A stretch of 64,000 bases of DNA from Phallusia mammillata (Eukaryota). Below, one piece after another: positions 3,951 through 19,956 of the stretch. The DNA lies in the NCBI GenBank assembly GCA_965637545.1, contig OZ281501.1:15004001-15068000 (forward strand). The letters are read 5' to 3'. The notes under the pieces are model-generated. The model searched no databases and was not told the DNA's origin. It was given only the letters and a program-made list of their open reading frames with translations. Both the position numbers and the translations under genes were made by a program. The first letter of the stretch is position 1; every line of letters starts with the position of its first letter.

Positions 3951-4944
3951 GCCAAATGTGTGGTTGGTTGTGCGTCATTGGTGCCACACTGACTAGCTCC
4001 AGACGGGATTGGTGAAGGTGAAAAAATCAAATAGCTTCTGGTAAACACTCATCGAGTTTCGGTAGCATTTGTTCTGACCAACCAAAAACGACATGTAAAG
4101 GTTGATTTCCCTGGTCAAGGGGTAAAAAGCAGACTGTACCCTAGATTAGTGAAGGTAACTTATGCGGTAAAGGATTTACAATTTTTCTTAAAAGGGGAAA
4201 GGTTTTTAATTCAGATGTTGGATGCAGCCATTTTGTTCTTGTTGTACAATGTTAGTGTTACGCCTTCGGGTAATCTTGTTGTTTTCTTGAAGTTTTCTAT
4301 AGCAGCAGTCTACAAACGGAAGCAAGCATGGTTCAAGCAAGGACCATAAGTTGCCTGGGCTGGAACTTGTTATTAGACGTGTATTATGTGTTGAGTTTAG
4401 TTTATTTCGAGTGAAACAAATTGTGGCAGCACATTTGCGCTAAAATATTCACCAAGTTGCGCAACGATGAGACGTTATAAAACGCGACAAGTATAAGGCA
4501 CAATTGGTCGATAGATGGTAAAGGCGCTGCAGCAAGCGTTATGTAGTGGGACTAGCATTAAAGTTAAGGTTGGATTAATAGAATCTAAAACAACCCGTGT
4601 TAGGGAAATTAAAGAAAGATGCAGTAAAGAAGTGTAACATTGGAAGGTATATTGTTGCTTCAGTAAAAAGATTACTAGGCAAAATAAAATCTTTAAGAAG
4701 ACGCCTATTTGATTATTAACCGATGACACAACTAAACATAACTACACAGTTGTATCTAAATACTGTTGTGTCGTCTTTAACAGTTACTCATTACCTAACC
4801 ATGAAACGTTAAAAACTATGTTTCAATTCTCATGTAAAACGTTGGCTAAGTATTTTTCGAGAGTTAAACACACATTTATTTGTAGAAGTTTAAATTTAAA
4901 ATCTGAAACCTATATTCGCAGTTAAAATTTGGAATCCACGAAAT

Positions 4945-7900
4945 ATGCATAGCCTTCTGGCACTTGCAGTTCTTGCTCTTTGTATCATATGTAAGTGAAT
5001 ATTATATGGATATGTAGCGTGTTTAACGGTACATTTTGGACATAAACGATTTGACAGTCAAATTCGATTTGCAAGATTTGGGTCTAATAAATTTAAAAGC
5101 GTTTAGGTAACTACACATTTTTTCGCATTTACTTAAGTACATAAACGTAAATATAAACCGAGAGTATATATTTTTACCATCAAATTTTGCGTTACTTTTG
5201 TCACAGAATGTTTTGCCAATGCCATTTTCTTCCGTCAAAGTTATACGCTTAGGGATTGTGCGCTCTGACTGTTTAATTTGCAGCAAAGAAACATACGAAG
5301 CCAAGCTTGTCGTTAATCAAATGCGGTATTTTTTCAACTTAAATCATCCATCTCATATGACACACAAAACAAACTGGATTGGACATATTGCCGCATGTTT
5401 GCGCGCAAAATAAAAATCAAACTCAAATTTTTGTGTATCGGCCGAAAAAATGTGTAAATCTCTTACCTTATGGTTCAAATTTATGCAGCAACACAAGGTT
5501 CACGTTTATGTCGTGATGGTCGGTTTCAGTGCCCAGGTGACATTTGTCTCAACAATGACCAGTTGTGTGACGGAACGAACGACTGCTTTAATAACGAAGA
5601 TGAAAGCTACGAATACGCAAGATGCGGTGAGTGCAAAAATACTTAAAACACACAATTTAAAGCAAAGGGTAATTGTTGAAGTACGATGGAGCACAGTTGC
5701 TTTCTAGGCGCAAGGTCGTAGGTCCGAATCTTGTGTCGACTCCTGTGCATTTGTGATCAAACTCCAAAAATAAAGGAAGGGTATGGAGAGTATGGAAAGC
5801 AAACCAGTTCAGTAATGCAATTTAACGCTTTCTTTACACAAAAGCAAGATTTTTGTTATGTTTGTTATTAAATTTTAGTATAACTGTTAAATATAACAAA
5901 TGGTAAATATATTTTTCAAATTGCCAAGGTCGTTTTTGTAACAGATCAAAGAACTAGATCTAAAATCTTAAACTTGACATTATATATTATGCATTCCTGG
6001 TATTATTTTTAGCTTACCGGAATGTTTTAGTTCCCAAGCTAAACTTCGTTAAAAGCGAAGGATTTTATAAAACTTAGATCTATGTGAATTTCAGTTTTTA
6101 GATGCATAATGCCAACTCATATTTATACCTCTAAGTCGATCAATATGTAGGGGAATGCCCTCAGCGCGATTCTGATGCGGCTCAAGCTGCTGGACAAGAC
6201 TGCAGAAAACCTTGCACTTCTGACTTCGATTGCAGGAAGAAGAAGCGTTGCAGGTGTGACGGCCATTGCGGGATGTCCTGTTTCAATCCAAGTAAGTATC
6301 TTTTTGCTTTAAATATTCGGACAAAAATACTATTCACTTGTACATCAACAGGCATCGATAACCGCTGCTGTTGTTTTGTTGCTTTACGATACCCTAGTCT
6401 GTGTGTTACGTGCATTTGAAGAGAACTGTGGATCCAAATTTAATGAATTGCTTAAGTGCACAAAACTGTAACGAAATTTGTTGATAAGTGATATAAACCA
6501 CTAATAATATTACAGATTTTGCTAAGCTAAAATACAACTAGTTTTCAATGAAACAAATTAAACAAAAAGACCACACAACAACGAAACTTACCAGTGTAAT
6601 TTTATTTGTGAAAGTTATCATGATGGTAATAATTGTTGGTTCCGGGTAAAATGTATTTAACAAGTTGGTGTGAATTCAAGGCGGTAAAATTTTCTATCCA
6701 TTTCTGTAATCCACAGATTTGGAGTGCGAAGGAAATCCACCGACGGTAAACGGAAGCACTGGATTCAAAGTTTATCGTTTCGTCAATCATTCTCTGGTCC
6801 GGGTGACAGAGTATTTTCAGTTTGACGACTTTGTTGAGTATTCTTGTCCCGCCGGCATGGTCTCAATTGGTCCTCAAATTCGATGCACTTCGCGCAAAAC
6901 GTGGACCGATGCTCAAGTGCACTGTGCAGGTAAAAATGTGTCATACTGTTACGAAGGCTTGTGGAAGAATAGGAACGTTAATTGAATGTGTTAATTGAAA
7001 TTGAAAATAAAACAAGATTTCTTGTCATCTAACCACAAAATCGTCATTACACATGTGTGTCCAGTTTACTACAACTATTTTTTTTTAGTACAACTAATAA
7101 CTAATTTTATACAACTTATAATATGTTTGTGTCTCTGGTTAGATACGTTGGTCATTTAGTTTATTGTTTGGAACAAATGATAGTCATTTAGTTAAATAAA
7201 GGGTAATAAATGGCCCGTTTTACTAGTGATGTACAGATTTTTTTGGCCGAATTAACCTTTTTCACAAACATTCAGTTGGGCAAAAACGATTTTGGTACGA
7301 ACACAAATTCAAAGCGTAAATCGTGTATTTTCTGCTTAATAAGGAACCCAATTATCTTTTTAACTGCGCAAAAACTAAAATCACGTTTAATTTACGATCT
7401 TTAAAACTTTAGCCTCCACCCGGCAATAACTCATTCATTATGTAATAGCTGGAGAGTTAATTTATAGTGAAACTGTTTGCCTGATAGTAAAACTTATGTT
7501 TACATGTTAAACACGTAGCATAATAGATGCTTCAGTTGATTTGGCAAAGAAAGCCGACTCGGTGCATCACTGCGTTTGAGTTAAGTTTATTTCGCTTGGT
7601 AAAAGGCCAACTTAACTACTTCGCACAAAGGGTGCTAGCAATTAGATTAACGTTTTCAGCCCTGTGACTAAATCAAGTTGTGCATTCCCAACTTAACATA
7701 GTTTTGTAACTGAATGTAAAAGTAAATTCACAAAAACAAACAAATAGGCAAACTCAAATAAATTACTTAATCAAAACATGCGTTTAAATTAAGTTCTGTT
7801 GTTGCAGTTAAGTGTCGACCTGATAGCTACAGCGTAGGACTCTACAATCTGACTTGCGGAGAAGATTGTGTCACAGATGAAGATTGCACTGGCACGCAGA

Positions 7901-10900
7901 GATGCATGTGTGATGGTCCATGTGGAAGAAAGTGCGTCGACCCCCGTAAGTCAACATTAAAGTAATTAGGCTCTACGAATTTTGAAATGTTTGGTTTTAA
8001 AAGACGCCAAACAACGAAGACAAACAAGTAACCGTTGCTATACAAGTCATAGTAAACTGAAGCTTTCAATGCACCTACATCAATCTGTGTTACTCGTTTT
8101 GCAATGTATAATATCAATTTCGCCGATTTAATTGCATCCTCAGTTCTACGCAATAAATTCGTAGCTTGAATCATCTGTACTTAGTGCACGTTGGTTCAGG
8201 ACGATTTCTGCAAAAGCACAACTTATACAAGTAACTTATACACAATTTAAAATTTCCACATTCTTAAAGATTTTGCACAGTTTAAACCAGGGAGTCGAAC
8301 CGCTTGTTATATGGGTTCGGGTTTTTATTGTTTTGCTTTATGGGGCTTGGGTTCGTTTCAGGTTTTAAAAAATGTATGTTTTAGGGTTAGGGTTATTTCC
8401 GGTTCGAGCAAATTACTGTTGCGGTTTTCAAACCGATTACAATCCCTATTCTTTTAAAATAATTCTGCTCATTATCTATATGGCCTTGTTTTTGACCGTG
8501 TACTGCGGGAAAGCTTTAAGTTCGTTGGTTTTGACACGCCCTATAGCTGTTGTCTCGTGTCTATTCTTCAGTACGCTGTTTTGAAAAAAATATCACAAAA
8601 CATAACACAGGCTGCATTTTTACTGGTTCGATGTCGGTTTAACACTAAACAAAATGTAGGGTTCAACTCCGGTTCGAAGTTTAATAAAATCGTAATTTAA
8701 GATTCAAGTTTAATGAAATAAACCGCTCAAACTGGTTGGCGCGTTCGACTCCCTGGTTTAAACACAACCTCTAATTAGGAGTGTAAAAAAACATAAAAAT
8801 TAGTAAAAATTGTTTTTGGAAGTATTGAAATATTGTGTTAGTTTAATGGTGCGATTCTAGGCAATTTGTTGAGATTACAATTGTACTGAAAACCAGGCGT
8901 AAGAAACGATTCAAATTCTGATGCACTTGTTTCAAACATGTTTATTTAATATGTAAGCTATTGCTGTCAGGCATAATATCAAGTTTTATAGAGTTCTTCT
9001 GGCAATTGCATTTTTGTTCGTACTACGTGCATTCATTGTTATTTACCCTAATGAAGGCGACCTGTTATATAGGACGTCGAAACGTCGGAATAACAATACA
9101 TTTGCCAGAAGAGCTCTATAAAACTTGATGTTTATTTAATTAGGCCTACCATATTTACATCAACAAAAAGGAGGACACATTATTGAAAAAACATAAAAAG
9201 CTTTTTTAGGGCCCAATAACAAGAGCAAAATATATTAGACTTTTTTGGCAGTCAAATGATCCAATATGAAGTTAAGCGGTAATCACAATATTTTCATTAA
9301 CGTGCTATGTAAAATCCACCCATATTTCTTAAAATAAGCTGAAGATGTAGTCCTCGGCTGTTTTTAAAGGCATAACTGCACCATTGATATTTAGTAAATC
9401 AAAAAAATCAAAAAGGAGGACATTTGGGCACTTTTTATGGTCCTCCGAGGACAACTTGGTTTTTGTTAAAACGGAGGACATGTCCTCCAAAAAGAGGACG
9501 TATGGTAGGCCTAATTTAATGAGTATGTTTTAGATGTGAATTGCTCCGCTGCGCCCTCTAGGATACACACGAGAGTTGAGTACACAGATGAGGGAATTAA
9601 CCGGATTGCCAACTATCTTTGTGATTCCGGACACTACTTGGCAAGTGGGGACGCGTCACACAAATGTTCAAATTCCGGTCAATGGTATGGAGATCCAGTG
9701 ATATGTGAAGGTTGGTTGGAGCAGAAAGTGTATGTTGATTTATCCTAGTTCTATACCATGTTTTCATCACCAAAAAGGAAAACATATTGCTGAGAAAAAC
9801 ATGTAAGTATATTAACAGCTACTTACAGCACCAGCGAAAATAAAACCATGAGATATTTAACGAAATCCACGCAGTCAATAAATTTAGTCCAGTATGGATA
9901 AAGTTTAAATAAACGTTTAATTTTAAATCAACGATAAACACAACTTACACCAAATATGTGTTTGTGGTGTCACAAAGCTTGTGTGTTTAAAATGCACCTG
10001 TACTTTATGAAAAGATTAACTGAATGTGTGTTTTTATGAAAAGATTAACTGGATGTGCTGTTTTTATGATTGTGACCTAGTAAAATTTATGATTGTGACG
10101 TTAGTAAAATCCGAAAATTCTAGTGCATTGGAACATTATTTGTTGACCTCGGAGGCCATGAAATTTCCTGTTTAATTTAATTACTGACAGAAGCAAAGAT
10201 TTGCGATAAATGTAAATCCTAAGAAAGATTCTAAAATATTGAAACTGACACACATTTTACGCATTCAATGGCTTACCTATAAAATATACCTTACCATATG
10301 AAAACTTTGCTTTTTCAAACGTCAACGCAGACGGTGCGTTTTGGGCATCGTACCAACCATTCCTGAAAAGCAACATGTAATCATTACAAATTAGGTTGCA
10401 ATACAACTATATATTGGTACATGAACATAAATTTGGTACATCAAAACTTTGATTAAAATAGATGCACTGATTAACAGATTTATACAGTCGTATGCTACAG
10501 CACCAGTAATACCTTCACAAAGAAACACCTCCATCAGTTGACAGCAGTAAACACGTTAACGTTATTTTCACTTCATACTTTACTGAAATAACTAGAATCT
10601 TGCAAGTTAAACTGAAGCTTTCCAACCAACAAACTTCCCAACTGCCCTAGCAAGCACGAACGTATGTTTGTGCGAAAACTAAAGCTTTGGGTGTGGCTGG
10701 CACCAAAGTCTATATAAAACACAAGTTGTCCAACCTATTGTTACGCAATTAAGCCTATGGAGTCATTTTGTGTCCAAAATGATACAGCGGGTATGGAAAA
10801 ATAACACATAAATTGTCTGATTTTTACAACATGGAGAGCTTCGACGCGAATTTGATTCGCCAAATTGAATGAAAATTTCGGGTTCTAACATTTCAACGCA

Positions 10901-13900
10901 ATATTAAAAGCTAAATTGCTGTTTTTCATGTAAATTTGGCCGCTTAATTTTCATGTGAACTTTAAATATTTGCGTTCAGCGAACATTATCACGCTCAAAT
11001 GTTACTACTCAAAAGCTTTATTCGATTTGGCCTATCAAATTCGCGTTAAAGCCCACCAGTTTGTAAAAATCAGACAATTTATGTGTTTTTCCCTATACCT
11101 GCTGTATTAATTTGGACACAAAATGGCGTCCATGCGGCTCTATCGCGTAACAAAGGGTTGGACTACTAACATAACATAGGAACACCATACATGGATTTGA
11201 AGAGCAACTTAATCATAACCATAACTGCCAAGCTTTTATATCAACAAGTTCCTTGGCAATTATGTTTATGTTCACTTTTTTAGACGTACCACCATACTTG
11301 GTAAATCAATTTTTTAACTTATAATTTCTATCATATAGATTTGCACTGAACATTACCCGTAATTAATTTGCATCCTCAAGTTAAACATTGTGTCATCATT
11401 GCAGTCTATTTCACAATATTGTTCAGTGTGTCAAACTCAGGTTATGTTTGGTCAAATGGTTAAACGGTTGGGAAGGTGTCCAAAAAGTCCAAACAGTAAA
11501 AACTTTTGAAATAACCTATATGTAACAACAAAACAAACTTCAGGAAAGTTTTCGATCATAATTTTACTCGGGTATTTTAAACCACAATTTTAGAAATCTT
11601 CTGTGGTGATCCAACAAGGCACCTTGCTCGGCGAAATCTAATTCTCGAATCCGAAAGAAATGATACTTACGCTGTTAACTCGACGGTGCGATTTCGCTGC
11701 CAGTCAGGCTACGTTTTGAGCGGAGCAGCGAACCGTACGTGCATGGAAAACGGACGTTGGAGTGGATTATTGACAGGATGTCAATTCTTGGGTAAGATTT
11801 AAACATTGCCTTACCCGATATGGGAGCGCCGTGGCAAGTACTTATTTTAGTGTGACCTAATTTGGAACAATAAATTTATAATAAAATTATTATTTTGGGC
11901 TTCCTTTAAATAATTGCTGTTGCTTTTTTGAGTGCAAAATAATTCTTATAATCGTGCTTTAATCAGTCAGTAAAGTTTATAAACGTACAGTGTGTTGTGT
12001 GAGGCTGCTTATGTCAAACTGAAAATCTAATTTTGTAAAGCAAGCCCGCGTTTTGTCATTAAGCTGTCTAAAACATAAGATAAAATTGGGCATCTTTAAA
12101 AACGATTTTTGCGACCCACTCATAACAGGATGTGCAGCGAGAAAGTGGCTGAAAACACTGTCTTCGACTTACGAATAAAGTATAGATTCGCTACGATTTT
12201 TTTCGTTACATGCAAGCTTATTATGAGTATACCTAGTGTAAGCTGTGACCTACATTTCCCAAATTAAGTTGTACACGTGCAAGTTCGTAACTATCAAAAT
12301 ATATGTTTGTCAAACCCAACAAGCCCAACCACAATGTTACACAACAACAGGTGCAACTCGTTCAAAACGCTTTATTGCATGCGCAATCAGTGCCGATTTG
12401 ATTGAAGGAAACAGTAGTTCTCGAATGTAGTTCATTCGAAATACTTCCGCAAGCTCAAACGTCTGCAAGTTTAAACAACATGTTTACCACACGCCCTGTG
12501 CCCTCATAAGATGACAAAAAGGTCACATTTACCTAGCAAGAATCTAGTTTTGTTAAATGTAATGTCTATCTTTCTCGCTTTGTCAACATTCAACACGGGT
12601 TGTAGTATCGTATTCAATTGCTAATAGCCAAGAAATTACGTCGTAAATTTATAAACGTTTTTTTTAACAAAATGAAATCTTGTCCCTTTCCTGACCAATT
12701 CAAGTTTGCGACTTGCCGCCACACTCTATCTAAATTCTATCTCAAAAAATGAATCCCCCAGTTTTTACTTGGAAACTCATTTCCCAGAGATGTTGCAATA
12801 ACAATAACTAGATAGGGGACCGCATTAACAGCATGTTGTCTTTCCCCAGTTTTCACTTAGAAACTCACTTTTTAAAGAAGTTGCAATAACAATATCTTGA
12901 TAGGGAACCGCGTTAACAGCATCTTGTTATAGTTTGTAAGCAGCAATGTGACCAAAATATTAGCTAAATGACTTATGAGTTATTTATCTACTGCGGGATA
13001 TAAAAACTCACGTTTTTATATTTACCACAACCACGTCCGTTCACAGCCTTTTATATGCAACAACTATAGTGCGCCACACACAGGCAAAGGAAAAAAAAAC
13101 TGTTACAGAACTGCTGACCGAACAAAATACCAATAATTCAACGCGAAGTCACAGACACAAATGAAAGCATTACAGTTGTAGCCTAATTTGTTTTGTACAA
13201 GACTTGACCTGCGTCGGTTGTCGCTTGTCGTTGTTAACTTATTTTAAATCATCAAAATTATTAATGAAAAACACTTAAGGTAGTTGAATCAAAAAATTTT
13301 ACTGTAAAAAACGTTTTCATCAGATCACTCAATAAGAAATCATACTAACCTACTTTAGGTCAACAAAGAAGATGCCCTGACCCCGGAGTACCAGTGCACG
13401 GAAGTAGAGATGGTGATGACTTTGACGAATCCCGTACAGTACGTTTCGAATGCGATCCGAACTATACCATGGAGGGAGAAGCAGACCAAGTGTGTTTGTG
13501 GTCTTTGGAATGGAGTGATGGTGGAGCACCGCTTTGCCTGGGTAGGCATTTTGTGTGTATTAAATTCCTGACTTTTTGGTTATGTTTTAATATATTTTGC
13601 ATTCCTTTACTTCAGACAACTATAAACGTGCATGTGTAAATTTAGAAAAAAAGGATATGTACGTGGCTTTTAAGCATGATTCTTCCTTTCAGATGCTATT
13701 TGTTTGTTTTGCCTTCTTGGCTGTCATTTCCTCGGTTATCGTTCGTTTTGGATCTTTGCACTAATACCAAAACTTAACTTGCATCAAACTTTTGCATTTT
13801 TGTTTTGTATAGTATTTCTAACTTTGTGATTATACAATAAACAGACCCTAGGTACCCAGACAGTGCGAGCGACTCTCTCCGCAAACTTGCTGGAAGCGTT

Positions 13901-16900
13901 GCAACCCTCCCTCAGCGTGGCTTTGGACGTTCGATTTCCACGACGGAAGGCAAACACCACGAAATTGCTTTCATATTTGATGCGTCCGACAGCATTAAAG
14001 ATGTCCAGTTTATGTATGCAATCGCATTTGCAAAGAACTTAGTAAAAAGGGTATGATTTTTTAATATAAGAGAGCAACACATGCAAAAAACTGATTTCAC
14101 TGTAACATACCTTTTGCAGCTTTCAAATTACCAAGCTAGCATCAATTATGGATTAATGGTGTTTGGTAGTGATTTCGAAGTGAGGATTCGTTTGCAAGAT
14201 AATCAACAAAACTCTACAGCTGTTCTCGTTGAGCTTCGCAATTGTCTAGAGGATTATAGAAGCGGTGAGAAATTCATACGTTAAGTTGTATAAGTTTTAT
14301 TTCGCTTAGGTGAAAGAGAACATAGCGACACAATAGCACTAAGCAGAAAAATTCTGCCCAATGGTGAAACGTTTTGGAGCGCAAAACGGATGGAGGATCT
14401 AGGGCTGTTATCACACAAATATTATATGATTTTTTGAAATTTGTAATTATTTCAAAATTTTTTAAATAATTTCAAATACAAGCAAATAGTTTTTTCTATG
14501 CAATAAACCTCGATATATGTGCAAAATCAATTTTACATTTTTATAAAATTGCGGTTACACAGAAGCACTGCAACATATGTTTTCAGCCGTATATTAATGT
14601 TCATTTACCCATTCCCCCAAAAATGTTGGACAAAAAAGCATGACAATTTACTGTTTATTCCGGTATTAGTTACACCCAGGAATAACTAAAGTTATTCAAG
14701 CAAGTAAATAAAATGTTATAGATCACAACTCAATTCAGCAAGTATCCAAGAAAAAGCTGTTGAAATAAAGTGAAAAAATACACACGGAAATACATATGGA
14801 TTTGCAAAATTACGGAGAGTAACTGAAGCATGTCTCTATCTGTACTAATTTATTATTTTAAACAGAAAAAAAAGAAGTAGCCTAGATTTAATGACTATAC
14901 GAACTTACAAATTCATTTCGTAATTTCAACTACCCTTATTTAATAATGACTCTGGGCCTGTATCAGATATTCTAGATTATTGGTATTCTAAATCATGTAT
15001 AAGGTATTCTAAATTATTTAAATTATTTGATTATTTGAGTTGAAAGGAAAAAAATTATTTGAAAATTTCAAAACCTTTATTTGATAACAGCTCTAGGTGG
15101 ATCATGGTTGAACGCGCTGCAGCCACGCCAATTTTCTTGTGGTAAAAAGCATTGTGTTTCAGAAAAGTGCAATTTTTACAGGACTTTTTACCGAAAGATT
15201 ACGAGGCAACACGGCAACTAACAAAGCGCTAAAGGAAATTGGCAAACAAATGGCAATAAGCTCAAACAATGATCGTGATAAGGAACGACATTTCTTTTTA
15301 TTTACAGATGGTAAGTAGTTCTGTATTGTAAACGTAACTTGTTTGAGTAACTTGTTTCATGCAGGAAAAACAAATGAAGGAGAAAATCCGTATCAAACCA
15401 AAAATGAGATGCTTAATGAATTTGGTGATGTTCTCGAGGTGACCAGTTTCAAAATTTTTGTTTTAAAGTTTGTGTAAAATATTCTGTTTTTTTTTAAGTT
15501 TTGTTTGTTCATTTTTAAGCGAATTTTAAGCCGGTGCGCGAACGACATGTAATTGAGTGAAAAGTTGTTTTTTAGATTTCAATACTGAGCGAGTCTAGGT
15601 CTTCAGCAAAATATAAAGTTTAAACAACCCATAAACAAGTTAAAATTGGATGCTTTGAGTTTAAAGTGCAGAATAATTTAACCGGGTAATAATACAATGC
15701 CATCATATTCAAATAATTGCCCAAATATGCATATAAATGCACAGAGGAATGTCGCCCATTTTTGACAATTGCAGAAATGTTTTGCTTCTGAGTAAAAGTT
15801 GCTTACAATTTAACGCGGTCGGGTACATCTTAGATATACGTTGTCACGGCATGCACGTCGTGCAAAAATTTCGATCAGGAATCTCGAGACGCCGAGAAAG
15901 AGATGAGGCGGTTGGCAAGCAAACCCGAAAACTTTATTCGAATAGAGAACTATTACCTTCTTAACACTTACCTTGACGAGGTCGCAAATTTTACCACTGG
16001 TGAGTCATGTCACTTTAAGTAAAGTTGAGTGAGAGACATTTTGGATACAAATTTTAACGCACATAACACTACAATAATTCTAGAGGTAAATGTTTAACAT
16101 TAAATGTATTTAAGTCATATATGCATAATGTATGAGTATCTATTCAGATTTTCAGTTTTTTGTGGATTGGAACATTTGACAGCTGTCTGGTTAAATGAAG
16201 GATATGTGAAATGTTTTGTTTACAACATAAAAGCAATCAGTTTCACTTTGTATGACACTGAATCTAAATATTTGTAAATTTTTTCCCGTGATCCAATTTA
16301 AGTTGTTCAACCATGCGATATCAAGCAAGACCATGCCCCCGATACGGTGTTTCATATAAACTGTTTATAGTACTTTGGCTATATTAGGAAACAAAAAGAC
16401 ACAAAGGCGAAATATCATAAAAATCTGACGTTTTTGACTTTAATACGTTTTGTGACCGTATTGCTACAAACACTGCAACCCACATCAAACAAAAAGTTGC
16501 AAAAAGCCAATAGATGGCGTAAAGACCTAAAATATCACATTAGCACCTAAACAGGAATGGTGTTCGGAACTAAAGCTTTAAAGTTAGTTTTATTGGCATT
16601 TTTTAAAACCTTCTCCAACCCAGACAGCTTTGGTCATAAGCATTTGGATCATTTCCACTGGGCACCAATGCTCTTTGCACCAACCATCATTATTTAGCAC
16701 TTTTTGTTAGATTTTTAAACGAAAATTTTAAACCAGATACAGTATGAATTAGGACGAAACGATGCAGCGAAATTCTGTATTATTTTGTTTGAAAAAGTGT
16801 TAGTTTTTTACAAACAAAGTAGGAGCAGTTAATAACAGGGAGCAAAATACCTCAGCCACAAAGTAACAACTATGCCAAAGGAACTATTTTTTAAACATAC

Positions 16901-19900
16901 CGGATATACAATGTGATAATCACACATACACGTAACATAAATGTATTGGTACTAAAACTAATTTACTCCCAATGATCTTTACTTCTAGATTTAAAGAAAT
17001 GCGGCCAAGCTGGGAAAAAGGACAGTATTTTCCACAAAAAGGCGTTCGGCCGCGTCATTGGAGGAGGTAAATCAAAAAGAGCCTGGCCGTGGCAAGCTGC
17101 AGTAATGCCTAAAAATGGATTAACAGTTTACAGTGTAAGTGGCCTTTGTTTCAATAAGAAGTCCGCGTTCAAAAAAGTTCGCTCTGAGAATTAATTTAAA
17201 ACGTTTTTGGTCGATGCAACTATCTTACTATGGCGCTTTATAATGCCCGTGTAGCTGCATCGCGTTCTATTATCACATTCTACTTTATATTTATAAGGTC
17301 CCTTTGGTGTCCCACCAGGTTTTTTTTAAGGTTTGGTTTGGGTGACCGCAAAGTAGTTTTAAGAGACCGCAAGTGTTTCATTTCAATACCAAAAAATAGC
17401 CATTTTTCCTAAAGCTGTAGTTGCAAGTCCAAATTTTGGGAAACCGCTACGGTCCCCCAAAACACCATAAAAAAACACTGCTTCATTTTTAAAATTTACT
17501 TATTTTCCATCGGTTTCACTTAATGATTCTTTACCTTCACAGAGCTTTAAAGGGATATTCTCTGGTGGAAGCCTTATCAATCAGCAATGGGTTCTTACAG
17601 CCGCTCATATATTTGACAACTACGCCGACATCGAACAGCTGACAAGCACCCTGGCTGTGGCAGTAGGTAATAACAACTTTTTTAATACCGTTTCGTCTTC
17701 CTTTGTCGGATGGCGCTTGTAAATCTGTGATATTTTTTCTTTTTGTCAGGTATTTTCGTGCGGCCAAAGCCTAGACAAGCCATTAACCCGGCCATGAAAG
17801 TTTTCCAACCGCGAAGAATTTTTATTCATCAAGATTTTGATCGAGAAGATCGCGATGGAAGAAACAACTTTGATCATGACGTGGCACTGGTACGATTTAA
17901 TATTGTTTCAAAACAGAATCTCAGTTTCACGTTTGTTAAATTTTGATGGCTCATTGGAAAAATGAGTGTGGTCAGTATTTTGTTTTGCTGCAAACTAAAA
18001 AAAACTTCTAAGAAATGTGATACTTTCAATTGCCTTAGAGATGAAGCGAAACATTTCACATTCAATTTGAACAAAATGAGTGAAAAAAACGTTATGCCAT
18101 TTGATTTAGCTTGTAACTGAAATAAAAGGAAACCAACAACGCCGCTGGTAGTTGATTTTTTACAATGTTATCAGTGCTGTAAAATATCAAGATTTTAACA
18201 GATATAATATAAAACAATCACATAATGAAACGGAATATAACCCAATCTAATTGGATCGTTTGTTGAGATTGCAATAAGAAACAAAGGTTGTTTAGATTCG
18301 AATCGGTGTGGCACTTCGAGCCATCAGAGATGGAATTGATTGGGTTTGGTCGACCAGAAAACCAGAGTTTGACGGAACTATCCCCCTTTCACCCTATGTG
18401 AGACCAATATGTCTGCCCTGCAGCAATACTTGTGTCCCCATTGACAAGTACGTGGACCAGAATGGAAACCGAATAATTGAAGATGGAGACTCCGAGGATG
18501 TCAAATGTCAAAAGAAAGGCAAGTGGAATGACAGTACAAAACACGCGTGCAACAAAAATTTGCGCGTTAACCTTGACTTGGTAATAATCAAAGTGTAAAA
18601 TCCCAACTTTGTCGTTAGATATAGTTTCGTCCTCGCGAGAAAAACAGACAAACAATAGACTAAAAATTGTACAAATCATTTACCGAATTATCATGTTTTC
18701 AAACTTAAATTTGTAAACATTTCGAATCAAGTATGAATTTTCCCCTTGTTCTGACCACATATTTTTCCTCAAAATGCCCCACAAATTCTGTACAATTTAA
18801 ATTGGACTTGTTGGGTTGTACAGCTATTGCAACACAGGCAAGCATTTACAACGCTTTCTGTATGCAGGAAGATGGATAGTCGATGACTATGTTGAAGTTA
18901 GCAGAATACCTGTGATCGTTACAGGATTTGGAAGATGGACTTTGTCTACTAACAAAACGGTCCCAATTCCGTACCGTCTTAAGGAAGCAGTCCAACAAAT
19001 CCAGTCAGATGCCTCGTAAGTTTGAGTTGATAACAGTAATGTGATGAAGCGTTAGTGAGAACGCACCTTGCAATTATTCAACCTTTAACCAGGCCTTAAT
19101 GTTCGAATTTGGTCTTGGCGCTCTGTCATACGTCGTTAATGCTAAACCATTTGACTTAACCAGTAGTTCTCAACGTAAAGTAGTTCGATTTATGAGAATC
19201 GAGTGACAATTCTCTCAGAAGTTGTCATTTTGTTTTGCGCATGTCATTTCTTCTTCTATACGAATTTTAATGACAAGATTTACATTTGCATAAAAAATAT
19301 TGTAAAATTGTTTAGTTGCGGCAGTGTTTAAGAGATGATTAGTGGTGCTTTAATATTTTTGAATGCTTGTATCACCAGATGCAATGAAGAAGTTGAAAAG
19401 ATAGCACGATCGGGAATACGTTTTTTGTACACTAATCAGATGATTTGTGTGAAAAGTCCTGAGTGGTTGAATACGGTGTCTGACACATGTCAGGGAGATA
19501 GCGGTGGACCTCTTATGCGAGAGGTATATGTGCAATTGGGTAGTAAGCTTAATACAAAGTAAATCTATGTTGTTGTTTTTTCAAATGGTAAGTTGGTGAT
19601 CATTTACTCAAAACAAAGTTTTTAATGCCACTTCGAGCATTAGCAGTAGCTAACAAGAGTTGTAAACGTGCCAACTTTTTCGAATAATTTGAAAAAAGTT
19701 ATTTTTTTTAATCCTGACTACTTCTGAAAGCTTACGTCATCGAACGCAGGTTTAGGCATATAAACAACATTACAACCTTGGTTTTAAGTACAAGAACCCG
19801 AATACCGGAGAATCGTGTTGGATTCAAATTGGAATTGTCAGTTTTGGCTACAGCTGCGCTAAAGTTCATAAAGATGGATCTGTGTATCCATCATTTTACA

Positions 19901-19956
19901 CAGAAGTTTCCAAGGTTCAAAGTTGGATTGAATCAACGATGAACGATAATCCTTAA
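4945..19956 (+). CDS. CFB: Complement factor B/C2-like serine protease with extra LDLa and WAP domains (about 1029 aa)
   Basis: 21 exons: 4945-4990, 5284-5325 (uncertain, can be skipped in frame), 5489-5626, 6151-6291, 6717-6929, 7808-7945, 9534-9710, 11594-11791, 13359-13541, 13845-14050, 14120-14264, 15182-15310, 15365-15438, 15834-15999, 16989-17134, 17543-17666, 17750-17889, 18296-18518 (GC donor), 18868-19015, 19379-19523, 19789-19956. Total 3090 nt in one open frame. CCP-CCP-CCP-vWA-protease core; MIDAS DASDS...T...TDG; triad TAAH / DHDVAL / GDSGG; Bf-type ICLPC motif. Confidence 0.93.
5489..5626 (+). CDS. Factor B-like gene: LDL-receptor class A exon
   Basis: [39 protein letters not shown]: six Cys and the acidic DC...DE motif; phase 1-1 exon. 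Confidence 0.9.
6151..6291 (+). CDS. Factor B-like gene: WAP (four-disulfide core) exon 1
   Basis: [47 protein letters not shown]: eight Cys, CxC in place of the usual CC; tag|...|gtaagt; phase 1-1. Confidence 0.88.
6717..6929 (+). CDS. Factor B-like gene: CCP1 exon
   Basis: [12 protein letters not shown]...[31 protein letters not shown]: four Cys plus the conserved Trp; phase 1-1. Confidence 0.88.
7808..7945 (+). CDS. Factor B-like gene: WAP exon 2
   Basis: [46 protein letters not shown]: eight Cys, CxC variant; phase 1-1. Confidence 0.88.
8288..8755. mobile_element. hAT-type MITE, 468 bp
   Basis: 13-bp TIR CAGGGAGTCGAAC / GTTCGACTCCCTG; perfect 8-bp target duplication GTTTAAAC (8280-8287 and 8756-8763); internal GGTTCG repeats. 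Confidence 0.85.
8978..9129 (+). mobile_element. Short element with 28-bp terminal inverted repeats enclosing a decayed hammerhead-type core (Penelope-like remnant)
   Basis: atcaagttttatagagttcttctggcaa versus ttgccagaagagctctataaaacttgat (1 mismatch); core 9048-9088 CTAATGAAGGCGACCTGTTATATAGGACGTCGAAACGTCGG. Confidence 0.6.
9141..9513. mobile_element. MITE with TAGGCCTACCATA termini
   Basis: 13-bp TIR; repeated GAGGACA sub-terminal motifs; flanking direct repeat ATTTAAT (9134-9140 and 9514-9520). Confidence 0.75.
9534..13541 (+). CDS. Factor B-like gene: CCP2, CCP3 and CCP4 exons (9534-9710, 11594-11791, 13359-13541)
   Basis: Each exon is one CCP with 4 Cys and Trp. The last ([27 protein letters not shown]) has the CPDPG.P start typical of the CCP preceding the vWA domain in Bf/C2. 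Confidence 0.9.
10726..11165. mobile_element. MITE with imperfect TIRs of about 105 bp
   Basis: 10726-10829 is the reverse complement of 11061-11165 (gtccaacc..ttgttacgc..ttttgtgtccaaa..acacataaattgtctgatttttacaa); right end in TA. Confidence 0.75.
12754..12927. repeat. Diverged tandem duplication, period about 89 bp
   Basis: Two copies of tccccagtttt...gaaactca...gttgcaataacaata...gataggg.accgc.ttaacagcat.ttgt. Confidence 0.75.
13845..15999 (+). CDS. Factor B-like gene: linker and vWA domain exons
   Basis: QRGFGR|[22 protein letters not shown]...GNTATNKAL...[13 protein letters not shown]...[10 protein letters not shown]...[17 protein letters not shown]; MIDAS residues intact; five exons, with introns as short as 54 and 69 nt. 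Confidence 0.9.
16989..19956 (+). CDS. Factor B-like gene: trypsin-family protease domain exons
   Basis: KCG...AFGR|VIGG...AWPWQAAV...[19 protein letters not shown]...DHDVAL...VRPICLPC...VTGFGRW...[13 protein letters not shown]...[12 protein letters not shown]...[14 protein letters not shown]; catalytic Ser codon AGC at 19500-19502. Confidence 0.92.
17316..17480 (+). repeat. Dispersed repeat, copy 1 (small TIR element)
   Basis: caggtttttttaaggtttggtttgggtgaccgc...aagagaccgcaagtgtttcatt... matches the reverse complement of 20659-20778 with few differences; ends in aaaaaaacactg. Confidence 0.75.

Follow-up and report, generated by a model that had tools for sequence, protein, structure and literature searches.

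Two WAP-like modules in the pro-region of an ascidian-type complement factor B from Phallusia mammillata

The factor B gene of the window and its spliced architecture

A 64-kb stretch of contig OZ281501.1 from the ascidian Phallusia mammillata (positions 15,004,001 to 15,068,000; hereafter the window), which is free of any N, carries on its + strand, at 4945-19956, a gene for complement factor B (Bf). Our model of this gene comprises 20 exons in a single open frame that runs from an ATG at 4945 to a stop codon at 19954-19956 and encodes 1015 amino acids, with the module order signal peptide, LDLa, WAP, CCP, WAP, three further CCPs, vWA and serine protease. The combination, within one chain, of CCPs, then one vWA and then a C-terminal chymotrypsin-fold protease places the product in the factor B/C2 family. 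The original prediction, made from the DNA of this stretch, had proposed an intact reading frame with the same order of domains from LDLa to protease, and the 20-exon model, Pfam and RNA-derived contigs confirm it; the 1029-residue translation given there represents the same gene, and the two differ at just three junctions, all within the protease, that we set from the deposited P. mammillata cDNA product CAB3230286.1 (hereafter P0001; 'CiBf-3 complement factor B-3 precursor', 1018 residues).

The exons were assembled from stop-free segments with the signatures of Cys-rich modules, joined at AG/GT borders; Pfam was run on single exons of the window and full-length domain tests were run on the orthologue P0001. 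Exon 1 (4945-4990, 46 bases) contains the start codon and the signal peptide and ends in a phase-1 GTAAGT donor. Each of exons 2-8 encodes a single module and is in phase 1-1 with AG/GT borders, in agreement with what had been proposed for the N-terminal modules. These are LDLa in exon 2 (5489-5626; Ldl_recept_a 31.2 bits, cut-off 24.1), WAP1 in exon 3 (6151-6291; Pfam WAP 25.7 bits, cut-off 20.8), the extra, atypical and long CCP1 in exon 4 (6717-6929; Sushi 20.6 bits, cut-off 20.7 for this and the other CCPs), WAP2 in exon 5 (7808-7945; Pfam WAP 29.3 bits, same cut-off as WAP1), CCP2 in exon 6 (9534-9710; 28.4 bits), CCP3 in exon 7 (11594-11791; 44.4 bits) and CCP4 in exon 8 (13359-13541; 33.8 bits). 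CCP2-CCP4 correspond to the CCP triplet of vertebrate Bf. The linker and the vWA occupy exons 9-13 (13845-14050, 14120-14264, 15182-15310, 15365-15438 and 15834-15999), which are collinear with P0001, and the serine protease occupies exons 14-20 (16989-17134, 17543-17666, 17750-17889, 18296-18518, 18868-19015, 19379-19523 and 19789-19956, including the stop), with junctions taken from the alignment to P0001. The intron at 18519-18867 is of the GC-AG type (donor AAAG|GCAAGT), and its junction was placed only because the orthologous sequence requires it.

The single-exon Pfam run also gave a weak start of VWA; full-length P0001, with which the window model is collinear, scores 64 bits for VWA and 111 bits for Trypsin. 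The vWA of the window model has the MIDAS (metal ion-dependent adhesion site) motif DASDS, together with NTATN and FTDG, which supply the Thr and Asp positions, and the protease has its His (TAAH), Asp (HDVAL) and Ser (GDSGGP) as well as Asp189. A candidate scissile site, QRGFGR/SIS, precedes the vWA (13919-13945), and a similar, classical zymogen activation site, FGR/VIGG, stands at the N-terminus of the protease (17040-17066). As a factor B, the window protein would be expected to bind C3b, to undergo cleavage at the Arg bond ahead of the vWA and to form a C3 convertase; of these properties, the sequence displays the motif QRGFGR/SIS.

RNA-derived contigs from four runs with the same species label were aligned to the window at 90% likeness; no run on record as RNA matches the stretch at near-identity. 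One X3 contig of 3800 nt is unbroken over 5489-5628, 6153-6291, 6717-6924, 7803-7945 and 9534-9710 and reads in the order exon 1, LDLa, WAP1, CCP1, WAP2, CCP2, with joints at 4990/5489, 5626/6151, 6291/6717, 6929/7808 and 7945/9534, all of which lie on predicted GT..AG sites within 2- and 5-base ambiguities. The joint 4990>5489 is found in X10 as well, the contigs of which back the three joints LDLa>WAP1, CCP1>WAP2 and WAP2>CCP2. Skipping of a WAP exon is seen in none of the RNA contigs of the four runs, from which rare isoforms could escape. Both WAP exons lie in one open reading frame with the body of Bf and are retained in the spliced contigs and in the deposited cDNA product. The contigs and P0001 prove the spliced, WAP-bearing architecture in P. 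mammillata; they prove it for the species and not as expression of the window copy.

At the DNA level, the RNA contigs share about 93% identity with the window and differ from it by about 7%; 24 of the 36 codons changed between contig and window are synonymous, every Cys is retained, and the amino-acid changes of the contig are those of P0001. P0001, in turn, is the protein closest to that of the window (89.7% identity end to end, with two gap positions) and the top match for a profile of the three WAP modules of the window in a search of 1.84 billion representative proteins (E 1e-36, two matched stretches). The X3 contig and P0001 may come from a divergent allele of the window gene or from a recent paralogue; the window copy, which differs from the deposited cDNA product by about 10% in protein, is an allele, a recent paralogue or a member of a sibling lineage. 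An alternative explanation is that the window copy is a silent or decaying paralogue and that the RNA and the deposited cDNA stem from another Bf gene on the same chromosome. The divergence of the contigs and of P0001 from the window speaks for it, as does the exact match to the window of the deposited protein of the neighbouring gene (see below). We nevertheless regard it as unlikely, given that all 20 exons are open with every splice site intact, that the copy has lost neither the catalytic triad nor the MIDAS motif nor any Cys and that the differences are mostly synonymous; moreover, ascidian immune genes are often very polymorphic. On the strength of the 20 open exons and the conserved residues, we argue that the window copy is functional.

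Two further observations were made on the transcripts. In the region just ahead of the start codon (4922-4944), the match of the RNA contigs to the window ends at 4931, shortly past a possible acceptor (cgcag, 4917-4921), and the X3 contig has at its 5' end about 330 more letters that lie elsewhere; this suggests an upstream exon of the 5' untranslated region, or a trans-spliced leader plus other sequence. In addition, many RNA-derived contigs, with a very high summed depth of up to about 1000, lie over the intron stretches 8249-8445, 8840-9233, 9431-9627 and 10613-10800; they have loose ends and, around 8986/9117, joints on the opposite strand. These stretches are transcribed repeats of the dispersed kind, with arms in inverted orientation. 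At gathering scores, Rfam showed no family in positions 1-22000.

Identity of the two cysteine-rich modules

WAP1 of the window shows the Cys pattern C-x14-C-x3-C-x5-C-x5-C-x-C-x3-C-x3-C, and an alignment of 58 such modules has eight Cys and one Asp invariant throughout. The fifth and sixth Cys are spaced as C-x-C in all 58, the adjacent CC pair of the classical WAP domain being absent; this C-x-C aligns to the CC of elafin with a one-residue insertion, and the Pfam WAP model also accepts the variant in Hasp and in a LEV-9-like protein. A profile search of PDB sequences returned elafin first (E 0.0017), followed by SLPI. With the Pfam cut-off passed, eight invariant Cys, and elafin and SLPI as the best solved relatives, the WAP modules that had been proposed from the letters are supported at the level of sequence. 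At the structural level, the AlphaFold2 model of WAP1 has a mean pLDDT (predicted local distance difference test) of 93, and in a Foldseek search with the 46-residue model the nine best matches were all WAP proteins, namely elafin, nawaprin, SLPI and omwaprin; their E-values range over 0.24-2, with TM about 0.5, and none is significant. The C-terminal core superposes at 2.2-2.4 Å over about 28-31 residues. Elafin, SLPI and the waprins likewise possess eight Cys and an alignable C-terminal core (C-x5-C-x5-CC-x3-CG-x2-C), but differ from the ascidian modules in their adjacent C5 and C6, their shorter C1-C2 loop and their longer, inhibitory C2-C3 loop. We therefore file the modules, as the likely assignment, under a divergent C-x-C subtype of the WAP four-disulfide core.

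The principal competing assignment is to LDL-receptor class A modules. The primary paper on Ciona Bf reportedly counted two LDLR modules and one CCP as extra domains, and the number and position of the extra modules in Ciona, two Cys-rich modules and one CCP, would fit. We rejected an LDLa identity for the two modules, which have eight Cys rather than six and are devoid of an acidic Ca-binding cluster. When ten isolated modules were searched, PF00057 (Ldl_recept_a) matched none at E up to 10, and WAP is the only Pfam family that ever matches. Furthermore, the true LDLa of the window gene is a separate exon. Against this evidence, we hold the LDLa assignment to be extremely improbable. If the Ciona paper does count the modules in this way, its 'LDLR' modules would be the WAP modules, since Ciona Bf begins with WAP1 after the signal peptide and PF00057 has no match there.

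Distribution, annotation and origin of the WAP modules

The original prediction had presented the gene as a special, shuffled variant of Bf. This is not upheld: at the level of sequence the architecture is standard in ascidians, and the window gene is, on that evidence, an ordinary ascidian factor B with the standard layout, already represented in databases. In a profile search, all the ascidian Bfs tested proved to have two modules of the form C...C-x3-C...C...C-x-C-D-x2-C-G-x2-C. These Bfs are Bf-1 (P0177), Bf-2 (Q5H875, P0178), Bf-3 (Q5H874, P0180) and F6SWZ3 of Ciona intestinalis, two Bfs of C. savignyi, the Bfs of Clavelina (one of which has four such modules), two Bfs of Styela clava and the published Bf of Halocynthia roretzi (AAK00631.1, P0100), all of which carry Sushi, VWA and Trypsin. 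The same search found no WAP-like module in one amphioxus Bf and one frog Bf (P0207). The relatives were gathered with a C. savignyi Bf as the query, confined to its vWA and protease; with the whole of P0001 as the query, the candidate list was filled by CCP-rich proteins and no ascidian Bf was returned. In a tree of the 58 modules, those that stand second in the ascidian Bfs, WAP2 of the window included, all fall into a single clade (99/98 support) and are orthologous. Because the modules are shared and WAP2 forms this clade, we date the WAP-CCP-WAP front end to the common ancestor of the three sampled ascidian orders. In keeping with the organization of the window gene, each WAP at the Ciona Bf-1 locus lies on an exon of its own with phase-1 borders.

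Beyond P0001, the proteins closest to that of the window are the Bfs of Ciona, Styela and Halocynthia, with 32-36% identity along the body of Bf. The ascidian Bfs share with the window protein the family, the order of modules and both WAP-like modules; LDLa is present in the Bfs of Phallusia, Styela and Halocynthia and absent from those of Ciona and most of those of Clavelina, and Halocynthia Bf has five CCPs as opposed to four in the window protein. Vertebrate factor B and C2 likewise consist of three CCPs, a vWA with MIDAS and a serine protease, and in them, too, an Arg bond separates the vWA from the CCP that precedes it, but they possess no LDLa, WAP or fourth CCP. In contrast to the ascidian protease, that of vertebrate Bf lacks Asp189 and the classical R/VIGG site.

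Several side observations concern these relatives. Ciona Bf-1 and Bf-3 are arranged head-to-head about 4 kb apart (GCA_018327825.2, L001 1-22201), and the annotated Bf-1 product (975 residues) begins inside WAP1 and has no signal peptide, the annotated model being probably cut short at its 5' end. In P0183 of Clavelina lepadiformis (1230 residues), also a factor B, the vWA is preceded by four WAP-like modules; the WAP-CCP cassette would therefore have been repeated further in the Clavelina lineage. The same WAP also occurs together with CCPs and a protease, with no vWA, in P0011 of Phallusia and in proteins of Ciona and Styela that NCBI names 'clotting factor C-like'.

The records of these proteins seldom name a WAP. 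With Pfam WAP, modules isolated from other species reach 15-28 bits, straddling the cut-off of 20.8, and two modules have no match. When full-length P0001 is scanned with hmmscan, no WAP is reported at E up to 0.001, and its isolated residues 60-112 score 25.0 bits (E 2e-5); full-length Ciona Bf-2 gives WAP at 20.0 bits, just below the cut-off. Among the matches listed, precomputed Pfam assignments name WAP for one Clavelina Bf only. More generally, a standard pipeline can lose short Cys-rich modules inside long proteins. In a domain table of 2016, the entry for Ciona Bf shows four CCPs and no further module, and that for Halocynthia Bf shows five CCPs together with LDL_A, which the accompanying text gives as the extra module of ascidians (PMC4714745). 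In the literature that we searched, which excludes the primary Ciona and Halocynthia papers, no paper was found that links WAP with factor B in tunicates. The proposal that no Bf had been described with WAP domains may thus still hold for the name, as no paper naming the WAP was found in that literature, but WAP-bearing Bf sequences were published 20 years ago. The novelty likely lies not in the gene but in naming the modules as WAP of the LEV-9/Hasp type.

LEV-9 of Caenorhabditis elegans and Hasp of Drosophila are secreted scaffolds that, like the window Bf, have a WAP of the form C-x-C-D-x2-C-G directly before CCPs; LEV-9 consists of this WAP and eight CCPs, and Hasp of the WAP and up to 17 CCPs (PMC9083331). 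They differ from Bf in having neither a vWA nor a protease and act at cholinergic synapses (PMC9083331). A C-x-C WAP directly before a CCP occurs twice in the window Bf, as WAP1-CCP1 and WAP2-CCP2. The same subtype stands at the head of bee Hasp, where it is 57% identical to WAP1 of the window, and is present in a Clavelina protein that NCBI names lev-9-like; the head of a Caenorhabditis protein with a WAP and 10 Sushi domains also matches Pfam WAP.

A gene of this kind lies next to Bf in the window itself. Its 5' part was placed on the - strand at 2013-2538, with the start codon at 2538 and a WAP exon at 2159-2016, and is an exact match to the deposited protein P0006, a secreted protein of 1611 residues with a WAP, 12 Sushi domains, EGF and TSP1. 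The CCP exons of this neighbour run off the left end of the window (- strand, 1-2538). The neighbour and Bf are arranged head-to-head with their start codons 2.4 kb apart, and the WAP of P0006, which is of the same C-x-C variant, is 61% identical to WAP1 of Bf. Most likely, Bf acquired its WAP modules in the ancestor of the ascidians, when phase 1-1 exons of a WAP-CCP gene of the LEV-9/Hasp type were shuffled into it; since the exons are in phase 1-1, shuffling of a WAP-CCP cassette into Bf is the simplest history. The tree of the 58 WAP modules is too short to name a donor or to resolve the origin of Phallusia WAP1.

Possible roles of the WAP modules

We consider it probable that the window encodes an ascidian-type factor B with a shared WAP-CCP-WAP front end in which the WAPs act as structural or binding parts of the pro-region. 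Granted this reading, the chances are about even that the role is indeed structural or partner-binding within a Ba-like pro-region, which we favour over that of a canonical inhibitor. The WAP modules would be rigid, disulfide-locked parts of this pro-region that extend or orient the C3b-binding CCP arm, or that bind a partner, and they would leave with the Ba-like fragment once the FGR/S bond before the vWA is cut. We favour such a role because of the shape of the loops and the behaviour of a related module. By alignment and residue count, the C2-C3 loop has three residues here and eight in elafin, where the P1-P1' bond directly follows C2, and the C1-C2 loop has 12-15 residues here and six in elafin-type WAPs. 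Moreover, the WAP of LEV-9 is dispensable for receptor clustering, the only function assayed (PMC9083331).

Several of the results weigh against this interpretation. The structural match to WAP is numerically weak, both by Foldseek at the E-values given above and by VIA (Z 2.2-2.7, root mean square deviation 5.6 Å over 39 residues), and the N-terminal loop is unlike that of the solved WAPs and does not fit them. The tree, built on 46 columns only, does not group Phallusia WAP1 with the WAP1 modules of the other ascidian Bfs. The divergence of the RNA contigs from the window would allow a paralogue as their source and contrasts with P0006, which the window encodes exactly. Finally, WAP1-type modules have a conserved basic pair right after C2 (C-R-K-x-C), in the place of the inhibitory P1-P1' bond.

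On account of this last feature, a role as pseudo-substrate or regulator may apply to the WAP1-type modules. The WAPs could be protease regulators that mask or pseudo-inhibit either the Asp189 protease of Bf or the protease that activates it, and that later serve as soluble inhibitors together with the Ba-like fragment. WAP is a known inhibitor fold, with elafin and SLPI as the best solved relatives of the modules; the basic pair recurs in WAP1-type modules (CRKPC, CRKSC, CLRKC); and the protease of Bf combines Asp189 with the classical FGR/VIGG site. With a C2-C3 spacing of three residues rather than eight, however, the canonical binding loop cannot form as it does in elafin; WAP2 has no basic residue after C2 (CGEDC); and LEV-9 can do without its WAP, which is of this subtype, in the sole function tested (PMC9083331). 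On balance, we consider protease regulation decidedly unlikely. A low probability likewise attaches to the WAPs being working regulators in which the C-R-K-x-C loop of WAP1 would dock as a pseudo-substrate in the Bf protease or in MASP and the Ba-like fragment would be a releasable inhibitor or antimicrobial.

Alternatively, the WAPs might confer direct antimicrobial or microbe-binding activity on the released Ba-like fragment. Antibacterial activity is known for some WAP proteins, the structural matches include omwaprin, and WAP1 is basic (RKPC...RKKKRCRC); WAP2, by contrast, is acidic, and the modules lie between CCPs and not at a free end. We regard this activity as very unlikely. Autoinhibition and an antimicrobial Ba fragment, both put forward in the original prediction, remain proposals. 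The loop on which elafin carries its inhibitory site is shortened in the modules. Overall, the interpretation given in that prediction is partly supported.

With the structural or partner-binding role in the Ba-like pro-region as the favoured reading, what may be useful in the present analysis is an amended annotation: the two additional Cys-rich modules that the tested ascidian Bfs all possess are likely to be WAP modules of the LEV-9/Hasp subtype. Furthermore, this identification supplies a concrete type of donor for the 'ancient exon shuffling' that has long been suspected in ascidian Bf, and the two in-frame, phase 1-1 WAP exons constitute a clean, testable object. Should the WAPs prove to be regulators, they would represent a layer of control of the alternative pathway that vertebrates lack.

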